In this document: positions 5,501 through 14,593 of the stretch, in pieces
Layout: every line of letters starts with the position of its first letter
Position numbering within the stretch: the first letter of the stretch is position 1
Assembly: GCA_021613535.1 (NCBI GenBank)
Contig: CP075496.1
Location: forward strand, 6,510,001-6,574,000
Length of the DNA stretch: 64,000 nucleotides
Direction: 5' to 3'
Origin: Adineta vaga
Taxonomy: Eukaryota > Animalia > Rotifera
Translations under genes and position numbers: made by a program
Notes under the pieces: generated by a model
Told to the model about the DNA's origin: nothing
Databases searched by the model: none
The model's input: the letters and a program-made list of their open reading frames with translations, nothing else

Positions 5501-8500
5501 TTACTTTTTCGACATCTGTCCGAGTTTTTAAATCACATTCGCGTATGTAATTATCCAATGTTTGGCCTTTTCGAGGCCACAGCAACGAGGAATGTGGAAG
5601 ACGAGAAGCTATAAAAAGAGAGTACTTTAATTATGTTATTCGAGACGAAAAAAAATGGATAAAATCAGGATTAAATTTTGTACTTATAAAATAATCAGAG
5701 TTCCATGACAAACGATATGCAGCTGTATGTTTTAAATTAATAAGTATGGATAGCGTAGGTGTGAAGAAAAACGAGAACATTTCATTTAGATAAACCGTCA
5801 TTCAATATAATAGAGTCATTTTTATTAGAATTCATGATATAGCTGTAAATGTCCTTCACTTTATATCCTTGAGTTTTACTAGCTTTCCATAAGGAAAAAG
5901 CACTATCCACTCCTTTACAAATTTTAAATTATTAAATCATGAACAGATTGAGTATTATAATAACTTTGTCATGTTGTCAATTATAATCTGTTAAATATAT
6001 TTCCGTTAGAACAAAGTGCGTAGGAAATTCATTCATAAACATACTTTTTCTCTTCAAACACTCCTACGAACTTTTACAATGTTTATAATTGAATTCATTA
6101 TACACTAGTTAATTGCACCTTAAATAAACGACCGAGTTAATTTAAAAGGTTTTCTTTTGTGTTTTAAGCAATGATTTTGTTCAGAAAAATTCCGGTAGTA
6201 ATGTGTGTATATTGTGAATATTTGTATTAATCTTTGTCTTTCTAGTATTATACTACGATAGGATCAAATAGTTTGTATTTCCTAGTAATATTGACCATTC
6301 TTTCTCCTTAAATAACCGATTGAAAGATAAATCTGAGATTTTATAATTTTGTTGGAAATATGCGAATTTCAGTACCAATTTTTTTATAAAAGAGCTTATA
6401 TGTGACTTTCTATTCATTAGTAAAATGTCTTTCTGTAAGTAATTTTTGTTAATATCGTAGAAATGAATCAAAACTTCCGTCAGAACCCTAGAGACATCCA
6501 CTTGAATCGATAATATGTTTCAGTATATTTATAAAAAGTTTTTCCAATAATGAATTCAGGTGTACTTCTACTTCTGACATTCTAGGAAAAAAATTCAATT
6601 ACATAAAGTGTGTTCTATTAAATCTAATGAAGCATTTCTTCTCTTCCTTTTTAACGTTCTTCTTTCAGTAATAGTAGTAGTAGTAGTAGTAGGAGAGTAT
6701 TTTCTCTGGCAGAATGTAAGTAACATATTACACCTCATATTCATATAGCTTTTCTTAACAATGAATTAGTATAAACTTGAAAGATAAAGAACTATCTCCT
6801 AAAGATTACCTCGTATTGGACTATCATTTGTAGTAAATGTTGTAAAACTTTGATCCATTGGTGAGGTTGAATTAGTAGATAATGCTGTTTCTTCATTGTT
6901 AATTACAGATGATGATGATTGATTGTTCTGATCTTTTTCATCAATCAATGTTATTTCACTTGATATTGATTGACGATTAGTTCGAAGATTTGTTGCTTGT
7001 CCTAAAGTTAAGCGTGTTTGTTTATTTTGATCGCATATATCTCCACGAGAATCGTAACTTGATCCATATGAACCGCACTCATCCGATTGAAAATAGGATA
7101 TGCTTGGAATGTTTTTATTCTCATCATGCATAGGAATAGATGGTGGGGGCGGTGAAGTGACACGTAAACGATTTAAATTAAGAGAATCTTTAGGAAGAGA
7201 AAATATGGGATCACTATGAATACGACGATGAAGAATACGTTGTTGAGCAAGAGGATCTAGAAAAAAAAACATGAGAAATTCTCTTTGAAATCGAATATTG
7301 TTGCTTCTTACGGAGTTTTTGTCGACTATCATCTTTAGTTGTATCGTTTGAGACTATAATCGGTGAGAAGATTTTTGAAGGTGGTGATGGAAGATTATTT
7401 GAAGGACTTGTTAGATCATTGATTATTACGATTGGATTGTATCCCGTAATAGACTAGAAACACATAAAGTACTTAGATGTGAAAAGAGTGTATCCTTTTT
7501 TCTCTTCTTATTTTACCAATTTAGGATCAATATCAATAAGTAATGACGGATCACTGTGTTCAACAGCTCGTATACATAGAAGAAATGCTTGATAAAATAC
7601 GGATGTACGCATAAAAGCATAACCTTAAAAAAAAAGAACATCTTGTGTTTTAATATTTTCCCAGAAAAAAAAAAACTTTTTCCAATGAATATCCGACGGC
7701 AAGCATACTCGATTGAAATTAGTTGTTATTTCATTAAATTCAATCGTTATAAACTTGAGTAGTATTTATTCCTGATCATATCCGATTAGAATCATTACAG
7801 TCACAACGCCTACACATATTCTTTTATTTTCCTTTGCATTCAACATCCGGTAGTTGACTCTATTCTTTTCTTTTGTCTTCTAATTCTAATCTGTCATAGC
7901 TATTCAATCATCCGTATTACTATAATTTTCTCCATTCACCAGTTGAAACTTCATAGCTGGCCTTGGTGCCAATCATTGTATAATTAATTTTGTTTTCTAC
8001 GTGATTAGAAGACGGAGAGAAGAATGTTAAAGTATTGAAATAGTCTGTTTGTCTTCTTTTTCTTTTTATTCTTATGTTCGAGGAAAAATGATATACATAA
8101 AGATATTATTTGTCTCGATTGCTAACAAATGATTTCCTCTTTCTGTCATGATTTTCTCCTGATATTTTAGAATTTTTCTAGAAAGAAAGACACTTTTTCA
8201 TTTTGTCCTACTAATTACAAAAATTATGGCACTTTGTTCACCATTATAATACTATGTAAGTATACATACATTCATCTTTGTTCATTCCATGGAAAGAATT
8301 ACAAAACAAGTCTTTTATTTTAATGAGTAGTTCATAATAAAGATTAAAAGCTTCATCGAAATTTATATAACTTCATCTATTCATACAAATTTTTCCTTTA
8401 TCTCACCTTTGCATGTCATGGTGGGTGTTAAATTTCTCTCTTTTGTCAATTCACAATTGATTCTCAAAGGAAAACTAAAATCAGTTGAAAACTTGTTCGT

Positions 8501-11085
8501 ATTTAATTAGTCAATACTTCATATCTATCATCTATTATTTCTATTCTTTTTCTATTTATCTATCTATTTCATTCTATATCTTTTTTTTTCTCTCCATTTT
8601 GTTAGTATAGAATAAAGAAACACAGAACGACAATACAATATAGTGTAATAACTATCAAGAACAAAGAAGAAGAAGAAGAGTTGTTCAGTATCAATCAATG
8701 CTCTTCTTCTTCCATTCAACGATTAACCAAACTTCTTCGTCGCCTAATCGCGTCGCATCTCTCCTATTATTTGTTGTACTTGTCTGCTGTATATTACCAT
8801 CTAATATATCCAATGCTTATCCTCTATCTTCGTCTTTATTAGCAAGTTTTAACAATGACAACGGGATTACGAATATTATTCATCGACGACAGTTAATATT
8901 CGATAGACAATTTTCGAATGATCAATACATTGATCGAAATAAACGTGGTACTGGCTTCTATATTGTACGTCAAGGAGATTATATTGTTCTCATTCCCGAT
9001 TCAAATCATCATTTTACAAAAAATATACGTCATTATATCGGTCGTCGACGTTAGATGAATTTATATCTATTTCATTTTTCGATAGTTATCATCTGAAAAA
9101 ATTGTTTATTCCAAACAGCAGAAAATAAAATAAAAAAAGAACACTTTAAAAATAAACACTAAAACACTTACTATAATAATAGTTTGGAAGTAAATCATTA
9201 TCATTAATAGCACAAGATAATTGTTGAGATAAACATTGACTAATCACTGATTGATCAATCCATTGTTCGACTGATAAGCGAATATTTTCTTTAGAATAGA
9301 TATCTTGCAGTAAGCGAATATAACGTTGAGAATTAGCATTCAAACGAACAATTAATTGCCATAATTGTTCATATATATCTCCGGTATTCTATAAAACAAA
9401 ACGATTCGTAAGAATTTTCTATAGTTTTCATTTCTAGTACTCATTTCATATTTAAGAATTAATCATTATTTTCGATATTAATACGGAAACATCTAATCTC
9501 TACCTGAATTTTTATATATTAATTAAAAAGAATAACAAATGACAATGAGCTTTATATAGTCTAATACAAAAACTACGAGTAATCATATTGCATCATTTAA
9601 ATACAATATTAGCAGACATCTAGTTTATATTTCTATATGCACTGCATCGAGTAGTAGAAATTCGAACAATGAACTAGTCGATCGTGTCAGATTTTAGACG
9701 TAGGTGTATGAGAATGTTTTCAATTAAATTAACAATTTTTTCGTATCTCTTCACACTCATAATCAATGATAAACAGAAATTAGTTAAATATAGAATTAAT
9801 ATAAAAATTACATAGACACACATTGAAAGATCTATCAAAAAATAGATCATATAATGAGATCATCAAACAATTCATGCGAAGCACTTAGAAGTTTTTATGT
9901 AGGATTACTTGACGTAATAGAAAGAGAGAAACAAAAAAATAGTTACAGTGAAATCCCCATAGAATTCGTTATAAAATACTATCTACTGTCAATGAAAGTT
10001 TCATGATGAAAAAAAGATGTGAACTGTGATCTGTCACGATTGGTATAGGGCGGGAGTGACAAAACAGTTTTCTTTCATGTCTTTTCCGTGTTCAATTGTT
10101 GAATGAATGCCAGAAGCTATCCACTCAACTAGTACATTGAAGTTGCAATGAAGAATGTCATTAACTATGAAGATTATACAAGAAAAATTAATTGAAATGT
10201 TCAATTGACTTGACACTTTTGGAAGTTTATTCTAAACAAAATGTCAATCACATAAGCACTTTTTCTATCTACATATGTCTTAGAAATTACCATTGACTTA
10301 CTTATTTTCAGTAACAGAAAGAGATTATGAATCAATCTATTTCTAAACATGAATTTTCTTCTCATTATATATTGTCACTAATTTACTTTTCAAATCCAGC
10401 ATGATCTTTACGTAATTTTCACTATTTAAGAAATGTCTACTATTATAAAACTGTCCTAAACATGAACAGATGTTTTGAATAAGAATAACCTTAACTTATC
10501 ATTCCATATTAGACTGTCTATGAAATGAATTTATGCCTATCCATCTTTACTTGATAGAATTAATTAATACATAATGAAAAAGAAGCGATGTTTAATCCTT
10601 TTATAATTACTGAAGATAATTGATAGATATTTGTTAATACTTTAAGATAGACTGAAATTTTACTTCATATTACATTAGTCATATCGATAATGAAAATTTT
10701 CATATAATCAATATCTCGATTCCAGTACCTTAAGCTTCTTTTAAGCTTTAATTAGTATTTTTTATCAGAAAATAAAAACTTAACCGACAAATAAAATTCT
10801 TTCTAAGTACTTCTTCAACTCTTATTTCATGTTTAATCGATTAGTAAGAAATTTCAACAAATGATATACCTCTTTAAGACCATGTGATAGAATTGCTAGA
10901 ATAGCCAATCGAAGTCGTTCAATAGCGCCATATTTTGTTGTTAACGAATCACCTCGAAATTGAATCAATAATTCAACTGTTGATTTGATATTTGATAGAA
11001 GATTATTCACAGATGGAAGTCTAAATAATTGAATATTTAATTAATAACATCAAATTGATATTAAACAAACTTACGATGTATTCAT
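2543..11085 (-). CDS. RUBCN: Rubicon (RUN domain plus C-terminal Cys-rich Rubicon-homology domain), multi-exon
   Basis: Spliced exons give RUN-like LLSNIKSTVELLIQFRGDSLTTKYGAIERL..ILSHGLK and YAFMRTSVFYQAFLLCIRAVEHSDPSLLIDIDPKL, the Rubicon motif ENAHFYFSEAIISAIEQMK (~5400-5448), and RH domain QSYLCAGCG..RYCEYTGKYFCRSCH..WDF..VSNFA. ATG at 11085; probable last exon 2612-2543. Confidence 0.9.
8698..9054 (+). CDS. Secreted neuropeptide/peptide-hormone precursor nested antisense in a Rubicon intron
   Basis: 118-aa intronless ORF with hydrophobic signal segment (SLLLFVVLVCCIL...SNA), dibasic RR and KR sites and terminal G-RRR-stop amidation signal. AATAAA at ~9124. Confidence 0.8.
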   Translation: MLFFFHSTINQTSSSPNRVASLLLFVVLVCCILPSNISNAYPLSSSLLASFNNDNGITNIIHRRQLIFDRQFSNDQYIDRNKRGTGFYIVRQGDYIVLIPDSNHHFTKNIRHYIGRRR

Positions 11086-11931
11086 TCTTTAAAAAAACCA
11101 TAAAAATTCGAAAATTGTTTCTAAATCATATTGATAAATTTTATTCAATCTAAAGAAGGAAAAGATAAGTCCATGAATTAGTTCATACTATTTCGATTTA
11201 TATCGAAAGCAAACAAAGATATATGAAGATGATATTCTAAGTAAGAAAAACACAAAGATCATATCTGGATACGATCAATAAAGAAAATATCATCTCCTTC
11301 GTTTTCCAAAGTTAATTGTTGTAAATAAAGAATCGTTTATGAATTGATTGGAACATTTGTTTCTATATTTTATTGCAAAACTAAACTGAACTTGACAAGA
11401 TAAATAATCTATATGTATTTAAAACTTTTAAGAAAATATCTGGAATAGAAAAATGTCGTGTTTTTTTTCAGTAAAACATCAACTTTGTCGTACAATTTCT
11501 TTCAATATCATCTATATTTATCGTTTAATAAAGAGTTTCATATTTTTTTCCAATACAATTTTTAATTTATTCCAAAATTTTCCTTTTATTTTATTCTTCA
11601 ATAAAAACAATCTGTTTAGATTATTTTCCTCGGAAATTTTCAATTAGTCGAAAGTAGAAAAATAAACATCATGTGTGTCGATCCATGTTTTACCCATCCT
11701 ATTTTTCTTTCCTCCAATCTGTTTGGAGAGGAGCACGAGCAAACATGTTTGTCTGTCAAAATATAAACTTACATTTATTTTCATGATCTACATGAAATGA
11801 TTACAATTCTATTTATTGTTGGATTTTTCTTTATAGATGTAAAAAGAACTTTCTGAATAGTTCCCAAAATCCTCCTTTTCTTCTCTTCTTCCATCCGTCC
11901 CTATTTTTTGATTATTATCATCATCCACAAA

Positions 11932-14593
11932 ATGTCGACCAGCATCAACAGATACCTACGAAAGTCCTAGATGATTTATGCAGGTAAAATTAATGACATG
12001 AATGAAAATTGATGGAATCTATTGATTTTATTTTAGTCGTTTTATTATAAATATTCCTGCTGAACAACGTGAAGATCTTGTTCGTGTCTTATTCGCTGTA
12101 GAATTAGCTCATTGGTTTTTTATTGATTTTTATTGTGAAGATTATAATGATTTACGTGTTTGCAATATTCGAGAATTTGCCCAACAGAGTAAAAATTACA
12201 TTTTAAAAGTAATTGTTGTATTTTTGTTTCTATTTGAAACTTTAGTTTTTCAACATTGTCCATTTTTACGTGATTATGCTTATAATCTCGATCCTATTCT
12301 GTCACGTTGGCGTGGCTATAAATTAAGTGTTCCTACTTATGGAGCCGTTCTACTTGATCCAACTTATGAACATGTTTTACTTGTTCGAGGATTTTATAAT
12401 CGCGAAAGTTGGGGTTTTCCAAAAGGAAAAGTACAAGAAAATGAGAGTCCACTGAAATGTGCTATACGAGAGGTATGTATATATAATTAATATTTTTCTA
12501 AGAGAAATACAAGAAAGAAACTTGTTTTTCCCGTTTTTTTAGGTTATGGAAGAAGTCGGTTTTGATATGAAAGATCGAGCATTTGATGATCAATATTTAG
12601 AACGTGATCTAAATGGACAACTTATCAGATTGTATATTGTTAAACAAGTACCAATGGATACAAAATTTGCAGCTAAAACAAAGAATGAAATAAAAGTAAT
12701 TTTGATGATTTATTTATTTATTTATTGAAATAAAATTATCGTATGTCATTGATTTCAAACTAATTTCTTTCTTTAGGAAATGCGTTGGTTTCGTCTTGCT
12801 GATTTACCTTGTCATCGACGTGATACTACACCTCAGATGACATTGGGACTCAATCCAAAAGCTTTTTTTATGGTTATACCATTCATTAAGTAAGATACAG
12901 ATCAGTTAAATCAGTTTCGCAGAAGATTAACAATATTTTTATTTTTATTTTAGAGATTTACGTCGTTGGATTAATCAAGAACGTGGAATTTATTCTTCAT
13001 CGAATGGTGATTCAGATAATGCGAATGAATATATCAAACGACGTGAACAAGCCCATTTACAGCATCATCAATATACTCAACGACGTCGAACAACAACCTA
13101 TCATGGAGGTGGTACATGTCCACCACCACCTGCTCCTACTCGTCAGCCGACGATTTTACAGAAACTTTTCGGTGTTGATCATCAAACATCTTCGTACAGT
13201 AAGTCAAAGAAAATGATTTGTCACGATGATGAAATTCTATTCTTGATCGATTCAATGAAAATCTATTAAATATGCTAAGAAGTTCTGAGTGACAAATTAA
13301 CTTTACTTTCTATACATTTCAACATGATCTATGTTTTTTCAAGTTCGTGATAATACATCTAATTATGATCAACGAAAAAACTCAAGTAAGATCATTGCTA
13401 ATCTTACAACACAAAGTGCTGATGAACAACAAATATCAACAATAACATCCCAAAAACTACAAACTCAACGTAGTGTACAAGATACAATTCAACGACATTT
13501 TTGTCAAATATTGAAAAATGATTCACTCACTGTTACTGACAATACGTCAATGACGGAAACATTACTCATGCGAGAAAATAGCTCGACTGGCATTGCTCCT
13601 GTATCTACATTAAGTATGTTAGCACGTAGGAGTTAAAAATTGAAATCTATTTCGAACATGATAAGAACTAAGTCCTTGAATGAATCGACCTACACATTAT
13701 TTGAGAGACCTTCGAGATTAATAGACGAACAAAATAGAAACAGATGGATGTAATTTAATGGAGAAATCTATTTGTTTTTCTTAGAATAATTTATTCAAAT
13801 ATTGAATAGAAGTCTGGCTGATTGTTTCTTCCTGGTCGTCTTCTAATGCAAGAAAAGAACAGAGATCTTGAGTTCCATTAATTTCTGTGTCTGCTTTCCG
13901 TATTCTTGTCATTTGCTGGAAAAATATCTCAAGAGAGAATAATGATTAATATTCGTTGCATGATGGATACCTTCAGCAGTAATAGAAAATTGTATACCAA
14001 GAAAAAACGAAGAGAGAAAAAGAAATCTGATCTGTTCGTATATAAACGAATTAATCGAAGCAAAATGTTTTATTTAGATGTAAATCAATTAACACCACCA
14101 ATGTCCAATGATGACGAAAATAAACGTCCAATCACTAGTAAAAATCGCTCAACTAATAAAGAATTCTCGTCACAAAAAGAGAAAAAATCTTTGAACGCAA
14201 CAAGTCAAATTCAATATCGAATTTTACAACGTGGTGAACCAGATGATTCAATTTCTGCGCCGAAAAAATCTCAAATACAAACTGAAGTCAATACTTTAGA
14301 AAATAGTACGAATGCTAAATCTCAACGTAATCGACGTATGTTCAAAAAATTAGAATAATAATCAAAAGATCATGTCAATTTCTTTCTCCTTTGTTCATAT
14401 AGGTCGTACTGATCGACGTGTAAATAATGAAACAAATCGTAAGCAACAAAATCAACAACAACCATTTTCTAATTTAACAAATAATAATTCTTCCAATGGT
14501 TCAAATACTCAAACATTTCGTTATGGTGGTCCACGTTGTTGGACACAATTTCGTTTGAATCGTTCTGAAGTCTTTCGTTGTCTTCGAGAATAA
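11932..14593 (+). CDS. DCP2: mRNA decapping enzyme 2 (Box A plus Nudix domain); start codon ambiguous
   Basis: [30 protein letters not shown] (Box A), [14 protein letters not shown], Nudix box [34 protein letters not shown], and Phe-rich C-terminus [16 protein letters not shown]. Alternative start at 11685 (see findings). Confidence 0.93.

Follow-up and report, generated by a model that had tools for sequence, protein, structure and literature searches.

A transcribed, conserved gene nested antisense in an intron of the bdelloid rotifer Adineta vaga and its predicted amidated prohormone

INTRODUCTION

Can a short open reading frame (ORF) inside an intron of another gene encode a peptide hormone of its own? 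The question is raised by a locus of the bdelloid rotifer Adineta vaga (assembly GCA_021613535.1, contig CP075496.1), which lies in a forward-strand stretch of 64,000 nucleotides (nt) that we refer to as the window (C4:6510001-6574000; G+C content, 29%). At positions 8698 to 9054 of this window, a reading of the letters alone (here called the original prediction) had placed the precursor of an amidated neuropeptide of no recognized family. Rotifers, and gnathiferans generally, are the least sampled spiralians for peptide signaling. Gnathiferans have been called the next frontier in this field (Thiel et al. 2021), and the NP-HMMer preprint could detect only families with arthropod models. Here, we show that the ORF is a genuine gene under purifying selection. 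It probably encodes a classical prepro-peptide of the regulated secretory pathway, from which one predicted 31-residue amide would be secreted to act as a neuropeptide or hormone.

RESULTS

Translation of the window gives an ATG-to-TAG ORF on the plus strand (8698..9054; 118 codons plus TAG). It matches each segment of the layout first proposed, namely, an Arg-Arg (RR) site, a 17-mer, Lys-Arg (KR), a 31-mer, and a terminal Gly-Arg-Arg-Arg (GRRR). An ORF of at least this length arose in 4 of 2000 composition-matched shuffles of the surrounding 1548-nt intron. For evidence of transcription, RNA contigs from four runs of four studies were aligned to positions 6501 to 12000 of the window. The contigs represent cDNA, with many CT..AC joints, the SMART template-switch adapter, and poly(A). 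The main mRNA spans 8642..9164 (+) and consists of a 56-nt 5' untranslated region (UTR), the coding sequence, and a 110-nt 3' UTR. Both its ends and its strand follow from the loose ends of the contigs, which carry the adapter and poly(A): the adapter adjoins 8642, 8669, and 8672 (5' ends of plus-strand mRNA), and 13 nontemplated A residues follow 9164, downstream of an AATAAA at 9151-9156. Two contigs, 8642-9168 (run X6) and 8672-9152 (run X7), each cover the entire ORF. The plus strand of the peptide gene is the transcribed one, and its mRNA is capped and polyadenylated. The transcript implied by the original prediction is present in the cDNA of four studies.

Relatives of the encoded protein were gathered by a word-based search, a profile search run exhaustively over 1.84 billion representatives, and a word search with the mature part at E values of up to 10. 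Including two copies in A. vaga, the family has 35 distinct members, all bdelloid or environmental. The named sources are Adineta steineri, Rotaria socialis, Rotaria sp. Silwood1, Rotaria sp. Silwood2, Didymodactylos carnosus, and A. vaga; the rest are environmental contigs. The profile search returned 13 proteins, every one clearly of this family, and the mature-part search returned 22 candidates, all family members with no weak outliers. One family member, an environmental bdelloid sequence (P0024), departed from the profile where the mature peptide begins and ended in unrelated sequence, probably because of a frameshift or an error in gene calling.

The C-terminal part of the precursor is highly constrained. 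R-x-x-R is followed by exactly 31 residues and then by Gly in all 35 members. Tyr-Ile-Gly is invariant, with Arg-Arg after it in nearly all members (Gly-Arg-Arg in one). An alignment of 25 sequences shows no variation at R80, R83, G93, P100, D101, H104, R111, Y113, I114, G115, and R117, and the last 11 residues of the predicted peptide form the most conserved stretch. Column identity is 0.80 in the 31-mer, which has no gaps, and 0.98 in GRRR, compared to 0.54 in the variable spacer upstream (31% gaps). The ratio of nonsynonymous to synonymous substitution rates (dN/dS) against A. steineri shows the same pattern, with a value of 0.05 for residues 80 to 118 (9 synonymous versus 2 nonsynonymous differences), 0.76 for the spacer, and 0.98 for the leader. 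Overall, spacer values ranged from 0.74 to 0.80. For the mature part, dN/dS was 0.26 against the second A. vaga copy and 0.23 against D. carnosus, with dS near saturation. Purifying selection is concentrated on R-x-x-R, the following 31 residues, and the terminal Gly-Arg-Arg, in agreement with the earlier expectation that the mature part and Gly-Arg-Arg would be more conserved than the spacer.

Because it is both conserved and transcribed, the ORF is a genuine A. vaga gene and not a chance reading frame. The antisense position within an intron, together with the absence of this copy from a large protein collection (see below), could suggest a noncoding antisense transcript in which an ORF happened to arise. 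We regard this as extremely improbable and as already contradicted by the data, given the rarity of such an ORF among the shuffles, the low dN/dS in the mature part, and a frame that is intact in 35 homologues, including the second A. vaga copy at a dS of about 1.

The precursor begins with a predicted signal peptide (residues 1 to 40; 8698..8817, +). Its hydrophobic core at residues 22 to 33 has the best 12-residue Kyte-Doolittle mean (3.66). A signal-like segment had been noted originally, and a strong hydrophobic core is found in all 21 full-length family members. Ser-Asn-Ala before Tyr-Pro is conserved, and leader cleavage would fall directly after it, between A40 and Y41. The variable spacer follows (residues 41 to 79; 8818..8934, +), with low identity, gaps, and a disordered state in the AlphaFold2 model (pLDDT of <50). 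The RR site (residues 63 and 64; 8884-8889, +) and the 17-mer (residues 65 to 81; 8890-8940, +) lie mostly inside this spacer. The 17-mer had been proposed as a second product with an N-terminal pyroglutamate, but it is not conserved (column identity of 0.52, with indels) and is best read as spacer. Arg63 is widespread, the second Arg is replaced by His or Gln in many members, and the RR site is absent in some.

The conserved convertase site is Arg-Asn-Lys-Arg (8935..8946, +), in which R80 and R83 are invariant and KR corresponds to residues 82 and 83. The KR cleavage originally proposed here stands in position, since R-x-x-R is present in 35/35 members, but not as a dibasic motif, as KR or RR occurs there in only 8/35. 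The predicted mature peptide (residues 84 to 114; 8947..9039, +) lacks Cys and ends in Arg-His-Tyr-Ile, with Ile as the predicted amide. Gly-Arg-Arg-Arg and the stop codon complete the ORF (residues 115 to 118; 9040..9054, +), supplying the amidation-donor Gly and basic residues for carboxypeptidase trimming. The length of 31 residues and the Gly donor hold throughout the family. The Arg-His-Tyr-Ile ending is a rare variant, the usual one being Arg-Pro-Tyr-Ile (Pro112 in 32/35 members); His112 is one of two derived changes in the window copy, the other being Asn103. In the AlphaFold2 model, the leader forms a helix (residues 16 to 40), residues 41 to 83 are disordered, and the mature part contains a beta-hairpin (87-92/95-100; pLDDT of 62 to 75) and a short helix (106 to 109).

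As cleavage of the precursor is predicted from sequence, the ORF might instead encode a secreted protein (about 78 residues) with no internal cut, whose basic C terminus serves as a binding tail. This seems very unlikely in view of the spacer, which is nearly neutral, rich in indels, and predicted to be disordered, and of the invariance of R80, R83, and Gly-Arg-Arg. The disposable spacer, invariant cleavage site, length-locked peptide, and invariant Gly-basic end together make up the signature of a prohormone.

The family falls into two types, which differ at sites relevant to processing. Type A (30 members, including the window copy) reads Arg-Gln-Gly-Asp-Tyr ... Pro-Asp-Ser-Lys, and type B (5 members, including the second A. 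vaga copy) reads Arg-Lys-Gly-Glu-Tyr ... Pro-Asp-Arg-Arg/Lys. A further cut at the basic residue or residues at 102 and 103 would release an 11-residue C-terminal amide (His-His-Phe...Tyr-Ile-amide) as the active product, leaving the N-terminal beta-hairpin half as a separate or chaperoning piece. Lys or Arg occupies position 103 in 28/35 members, with Arg-Arg or Arg-Lys in the B lineage, and these last 11 residues are, as noted above, the best conserved. Nevertheless, no cut is possible at Asn103 in the window copy and six other members, a lone Lys preceded by Ser makes a poor site for convertases, and the N-terminal half is also strongly constrained, with a length that never varies. We therefore consider the 11-mer a rather unlikely main product, and the 31-mer amide remains well supported as the predicted one.

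According to our preferred reading, the precursor would be processed in four steps. The leader would be removed after Ser-Asn-Ala, a furin- or PC-type convertase would cut after Arg83, a carboxypeptidase would trim Arg116 to Arg118, and PHM/PAL would convert Ile-Gly into an amide on Ile114. The predicted product is a secreted, Cys-free 31-mer with a beta-hairpin in its N-terminal half and a basic C-terminal tail ending in Arg-(Pro/His)-Tyr-Ile-amide, and the upstream 17-mer would be a by-product of the spacer. The 31-mer may signal as a neuropeptide or hormone through a receptor; the label "neuropeptide" is thus a presumptive one.

Components of such a pathway are encoded in the A. vaga genome (100.8 Mb in six pieces). 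A PHM-type exon, recovered only through Cu2_monoox_C, is located at C6:11965627-11965929, with PAM/PHM as the best PDB match (5e-20). There are 11 P_proprotein matches, and PCSK1, PCSK2, and furin2 paralogues have been reported in A. vaga (preprint 10.1101/802215). The two best Cu2_monooxygen loci (C6:4738412-4739323 and C2:12936002-12936832) were rejected as PHM candidates, being DBH-like. About 10 further loci on C1, C3, C5, and C6 gave weak multiexon Cu2_monooxygen matches that have an exon boundary in common near profile position 97/98. Comparison of one such locus with the PDB gave no match; the group may represent an expanded, divergent family.

Several observations weigh against the regulated-secretion reading. 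The signal peptide was judged from hydrophobicity and a modeled helix, and its n-region, at about 20 residues, is of unusual length. Confidence in the AlphaFold2 model is low overall (mean pLDDT of 57.6). R-x-x-R lacking a basic residue at P2 fits constitutive, furin-type processing better than it fits the dibasic sites of PC1/PC2. The basic residues at position 103 in most members, and the Arg-Arg or Arg-Lys of the B lineage in particular, make a shorter product possible there. Finally, the peptide itself is a predicted one, and as the transcript data come from whole-animal cDNA contigs, its neuronal or endocrine origin is presumptive.

Furin-type RxxR processing and amidation occur in defense peptides too. 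The peptide could accordingly be secreted and processed for a role other than signaling, for example, in defense, as an antimicrobial, or as a gland product. The RNA contig depth of the gene is high relative to that of the host gene in the same runs (although depth is unsafe for ranking genes), and a receptor and a neuronal role are presumed for the 31-mer. A nonsignaling role is nonetheless unlikely, and more so than the 11-mer, because the very strong purifying selection and constant length differ from what is seen in fast-evolving defense peptides. There is also one copy per subgenome with no tandem expansion, the peptide has a modest net charge, and the model predicts no amphipathic helix.

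The start of the gene is conserved for what may be a different reason. An inverted repeat at 8666..8717 (+) forms a putative mRNA hairpin, in which a purine (GAA)n tract of the 5' UTR (8666-8681) pairs with 8700-8717, i.e., the G of the ATG plus codons 2 to 6. The encoded Met-Leu-Phe-Phe-Phe is invariant or nearly so while the rest of the leader evolves freely, and it is written with CUC and UUC, in a genome rich in A and T. All 13 sequences of one alignment (A1) start with Met-Leu-Phe-Phe, and a few more distant members differ. The sequences that we folded came from eight genes: the two A. vaga copies, one gene each from A. steineri and R. socialis, and four from environmental bdelloids, one of them B type. 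In 8/8, the minimum-energy fold was a hairpin of 13 to 16 bp (-17 to -24 kcal/mol; z of -2.5 to -7.5), and in most of them the whole AUG lay within the stem. The hairpin is conserved in Adineta and Rotaria; D. carnosus has neither the hairpin nor the Phe run. Between about -35 and +17, the DNA hardly varies.

By pair counting, 96% of cells were paired, with five one-sided changes from A-U to G-U, compared to 50 to 81% in slid controls. As the 3' arm is constant, the covariation test revealed no double compensatory change, and the RNA reading is therefore based on conservation and energy only. The inverted repeat explains the invariant Met-Leu-Phe-Phe-Phe start. We prefer to read it as a translational control element that sequesters the AUG, the rival being a palindrome that acts at the DNA level. 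A conserved hairpin burying the start codon may gate translation of the prohormone mRNA. Going further, the peptide might be the ligand of a bdelloid-specific (or unrecognized gnathiferan) peptide-receptor system, with the hairpin keeping an abundant mRNA silent until a trigger arrives; we mention this combination as a doubtful, if conceivable, extension.

Other features of the transcription unit were seen in fewer data. A GT..AG joint from 8255 to 8606 in one contig of run X1 (depth of 118; 48 letters on the short side) defines an alternative noncoding 5' exon with a minimum extent of 8208..8255 (+). This exon was observed in one run only; the splice skips 350 nt, and a 7-codon upstream ORF starts from the ATG at 8227. 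Within the alternative intron, positions 8385-8454 (-) gave a subthreshold Rfam match to U6atac (20.6 bits versus a gathering threshold of 33; E = 0.011), which is probably due to chance, and nothing in the Rfam scan of 8200-9200 exceeded the threshold. At 7973-8113, two runs have contigs over about 140 nt that then extend into sequence mapping to C6:2124920, so this segment is probably a short repeat common to another locus and not an exon of the peptide gene. A synonymous T-to-C difference at 8790 (Cys31) was present in three of the four runs, the contigs of the fourth breaking at that position. It is probably an allelic or strain single-nucleotide polymorphism.

The entire peptide gene is enclosed, in antisense orientation, by an intron of a host gene on the minus strand (7622..9169; joint of 7621 to 9170, CT..AC, in two runs), and its poly(A) site lies 5 nt from a host exon. 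The cDNA contigs delimit host exons at 11149-11075, 11020-10870, 9388-9170, 7621-7517, 7453-7312, and 7256-6823 (all minus strand). The host gene was searched exon by exon and gave a weak match to the RUN domain. The neighboring gene in A. steineri also has RUN, and the host counterpart in D. carnosus has RUBC_PIKBD and RH_dom. From the RUN matches in the window and A. steineri and the two domains in D. carnosus, we conclude that the host is a Rubicon-like gene. A tblastn search with the flanking exons placed the antisense gene between the same two host exons in the second A. vaga locus and in D. carnosus as well. Since the nesting is common to all three loci, it is ancestral to the sampled bdelloids.

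The second intact A. vaga copy is located at C1:6474394-6474705 and encodes 104 amino acids (42% identity by BLASTP). In the tetraploid structure of bdelloid genomes, ohnologue pairs are expected at similar positions on two chromosomes, and this is where the C4 and C1 copies are found, one per subgenome. Across Bdelloidea, the gene is conserved as two ohnologous lineages. Loose ends of contigs at 8690 match the 5' UTR of the chromosome 1 copy, which means that the ohnologue is also expressed. Its sequence is an exact match to UJR15103.1, annotated as "hypothetical protein [Adineta vaga]." The window protein is absent from the same collection of 15 billion proteins, and the window copy therefore appears to be unannotated in A. 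vaga. The original suggestion that annotation often misses short nested genes thus fits this gene, which is nested and has a single coding exon.

DISCUSSION

The locus provides a lineage-restricted candidate hormone that is well supported, with a product of 31 residues that can be synthesized and with two ohnologous forms kept since the bdelloid genome doubling. Adineta and Didymodactylos carry the gene in a common Rubicon intron, a microsynteny marker that can direct searches in monogononts, seisonids, and acanthocephalans. One of the two copies appears to be missing from the present gene set of A. vaga. The start codon hairpin, in turn, may be a compact example of translational control acting on a prohormone mRNA.

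Does the peptide belong to a family that is already known? No described family was matched, in keeping with the original suggestion of a possibly undescribed system. A Pfam search with 13 members at E values of up to 10 found no hormone family, only weak ETRAMP-type matches to the leader or low-complexity part. In the literature searched, RPYIamide or variants of it were not found (RPYIG occurs in the unrelated armadillidins of isopods), nor was anything on this peptide family in work on rotifer neuropeptidomes. The NP-HMMer supplements, which include bdelloid neuropeptidomes, contain no Pro-Tyr-Ile-Gly-Arg-Arg and no accessions of the Rotaria or Didymodactylos members. Among the named ESM-Atlas neighbors at 0.86 to 0.90, precursors of neuropeptides or hormones predominate (DH31, PDH, NPFF, NPF, urotensin-2B, gastrin/CCK, galanin, and PrRP), and the two highest-ranked entries were an unnamed bacterial cluster and C11orf94/Frey. 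These neighbors lend weak support to the precursor class and to no particular family.

Short likenesses at the C terminus involve two families. Neurotensin, neuromedin N, and xenin share a C-terminal Arg-Pro-Tyr-Ile-Leu, and the consensus end Arg-Pro-Tyr-Ile of our family is the tetrapeptide that neurotensin carries ahead of its last Leu (His replaces Pro in the window copy). Unlike in neurotensin, the next residue is the amidation Gly, which would give an Ile-amide instead of a Leu with a free carboxylate, and the peptide has 31 residues, not 13. The four-residue match is within chance, and membership was rejected on the Tyr-Ile-Gly-Arg-Arg-Arg end and the Pfam result, which included no Pro-NT_NN match. 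The tail Thr-Lys-Asn-Met/Ile-Arg-Pro-Tyr-Ile-Gly also loosely resembles arthropod ETH tails, Lys-Asn-Val-Pro-Arg-Ile/Leu-Gly (NP-HMMer supplement). The Pro-Arg-X-amide end of the PRXamides (ETH/pyrokinin/CAPA/NMU) is absent, with Arg-Pro-Tyr-Ile-amide in its place, and membership in this group was likewise rejected. Both likenesses were set aside because they are short and each lacks the defining C-terminal feature. NPY/NPF (Hormone_3) was rejected as well: the end is Arg-Pro/His-Tyr-Ile-amide and not Arg-X-Arg-Phe/Tyr-amide, PF00159 is not matched, and the ESM value is only 0.87.

The closest parallels are in architecture. CRF/DH44-type and calcitonin/DH31-type precursors are single-copy amidated precursors with the peptide at the C-terminal end. 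They have in common with the A. vaga precursor a leader, a long nonconserved spacer, a basic site, and one peptide of about 30 to 40 residues, followed by Gly and basic residues and then a stop or short tail. In the ESM-Atlas, the nearest neighbors include clusters of DH31 precursors (0.90), a weak feature similarity with recognition below the guide value and the sole link to calcitonin/DH31. In contrast to this shared layout, no similarity to either type was found in sequence or profile. The 31-mer is predicted to form a beta-hairpin and a short helix, with no disulfide and no Pro-amide, where the comparison peptides have a long helix, and calcitonin/DH31 membership was rejected for want of a Pro-amide end and a Pfam match. 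We thus appear to be dealing with an undescribed orphan family of amidated prohormones, known so far only in bdelloids, although the kind of gene, an amidated prohormone built like the CRF/DH44 and calcitonin/DH31 precursors, is itself ordinary.

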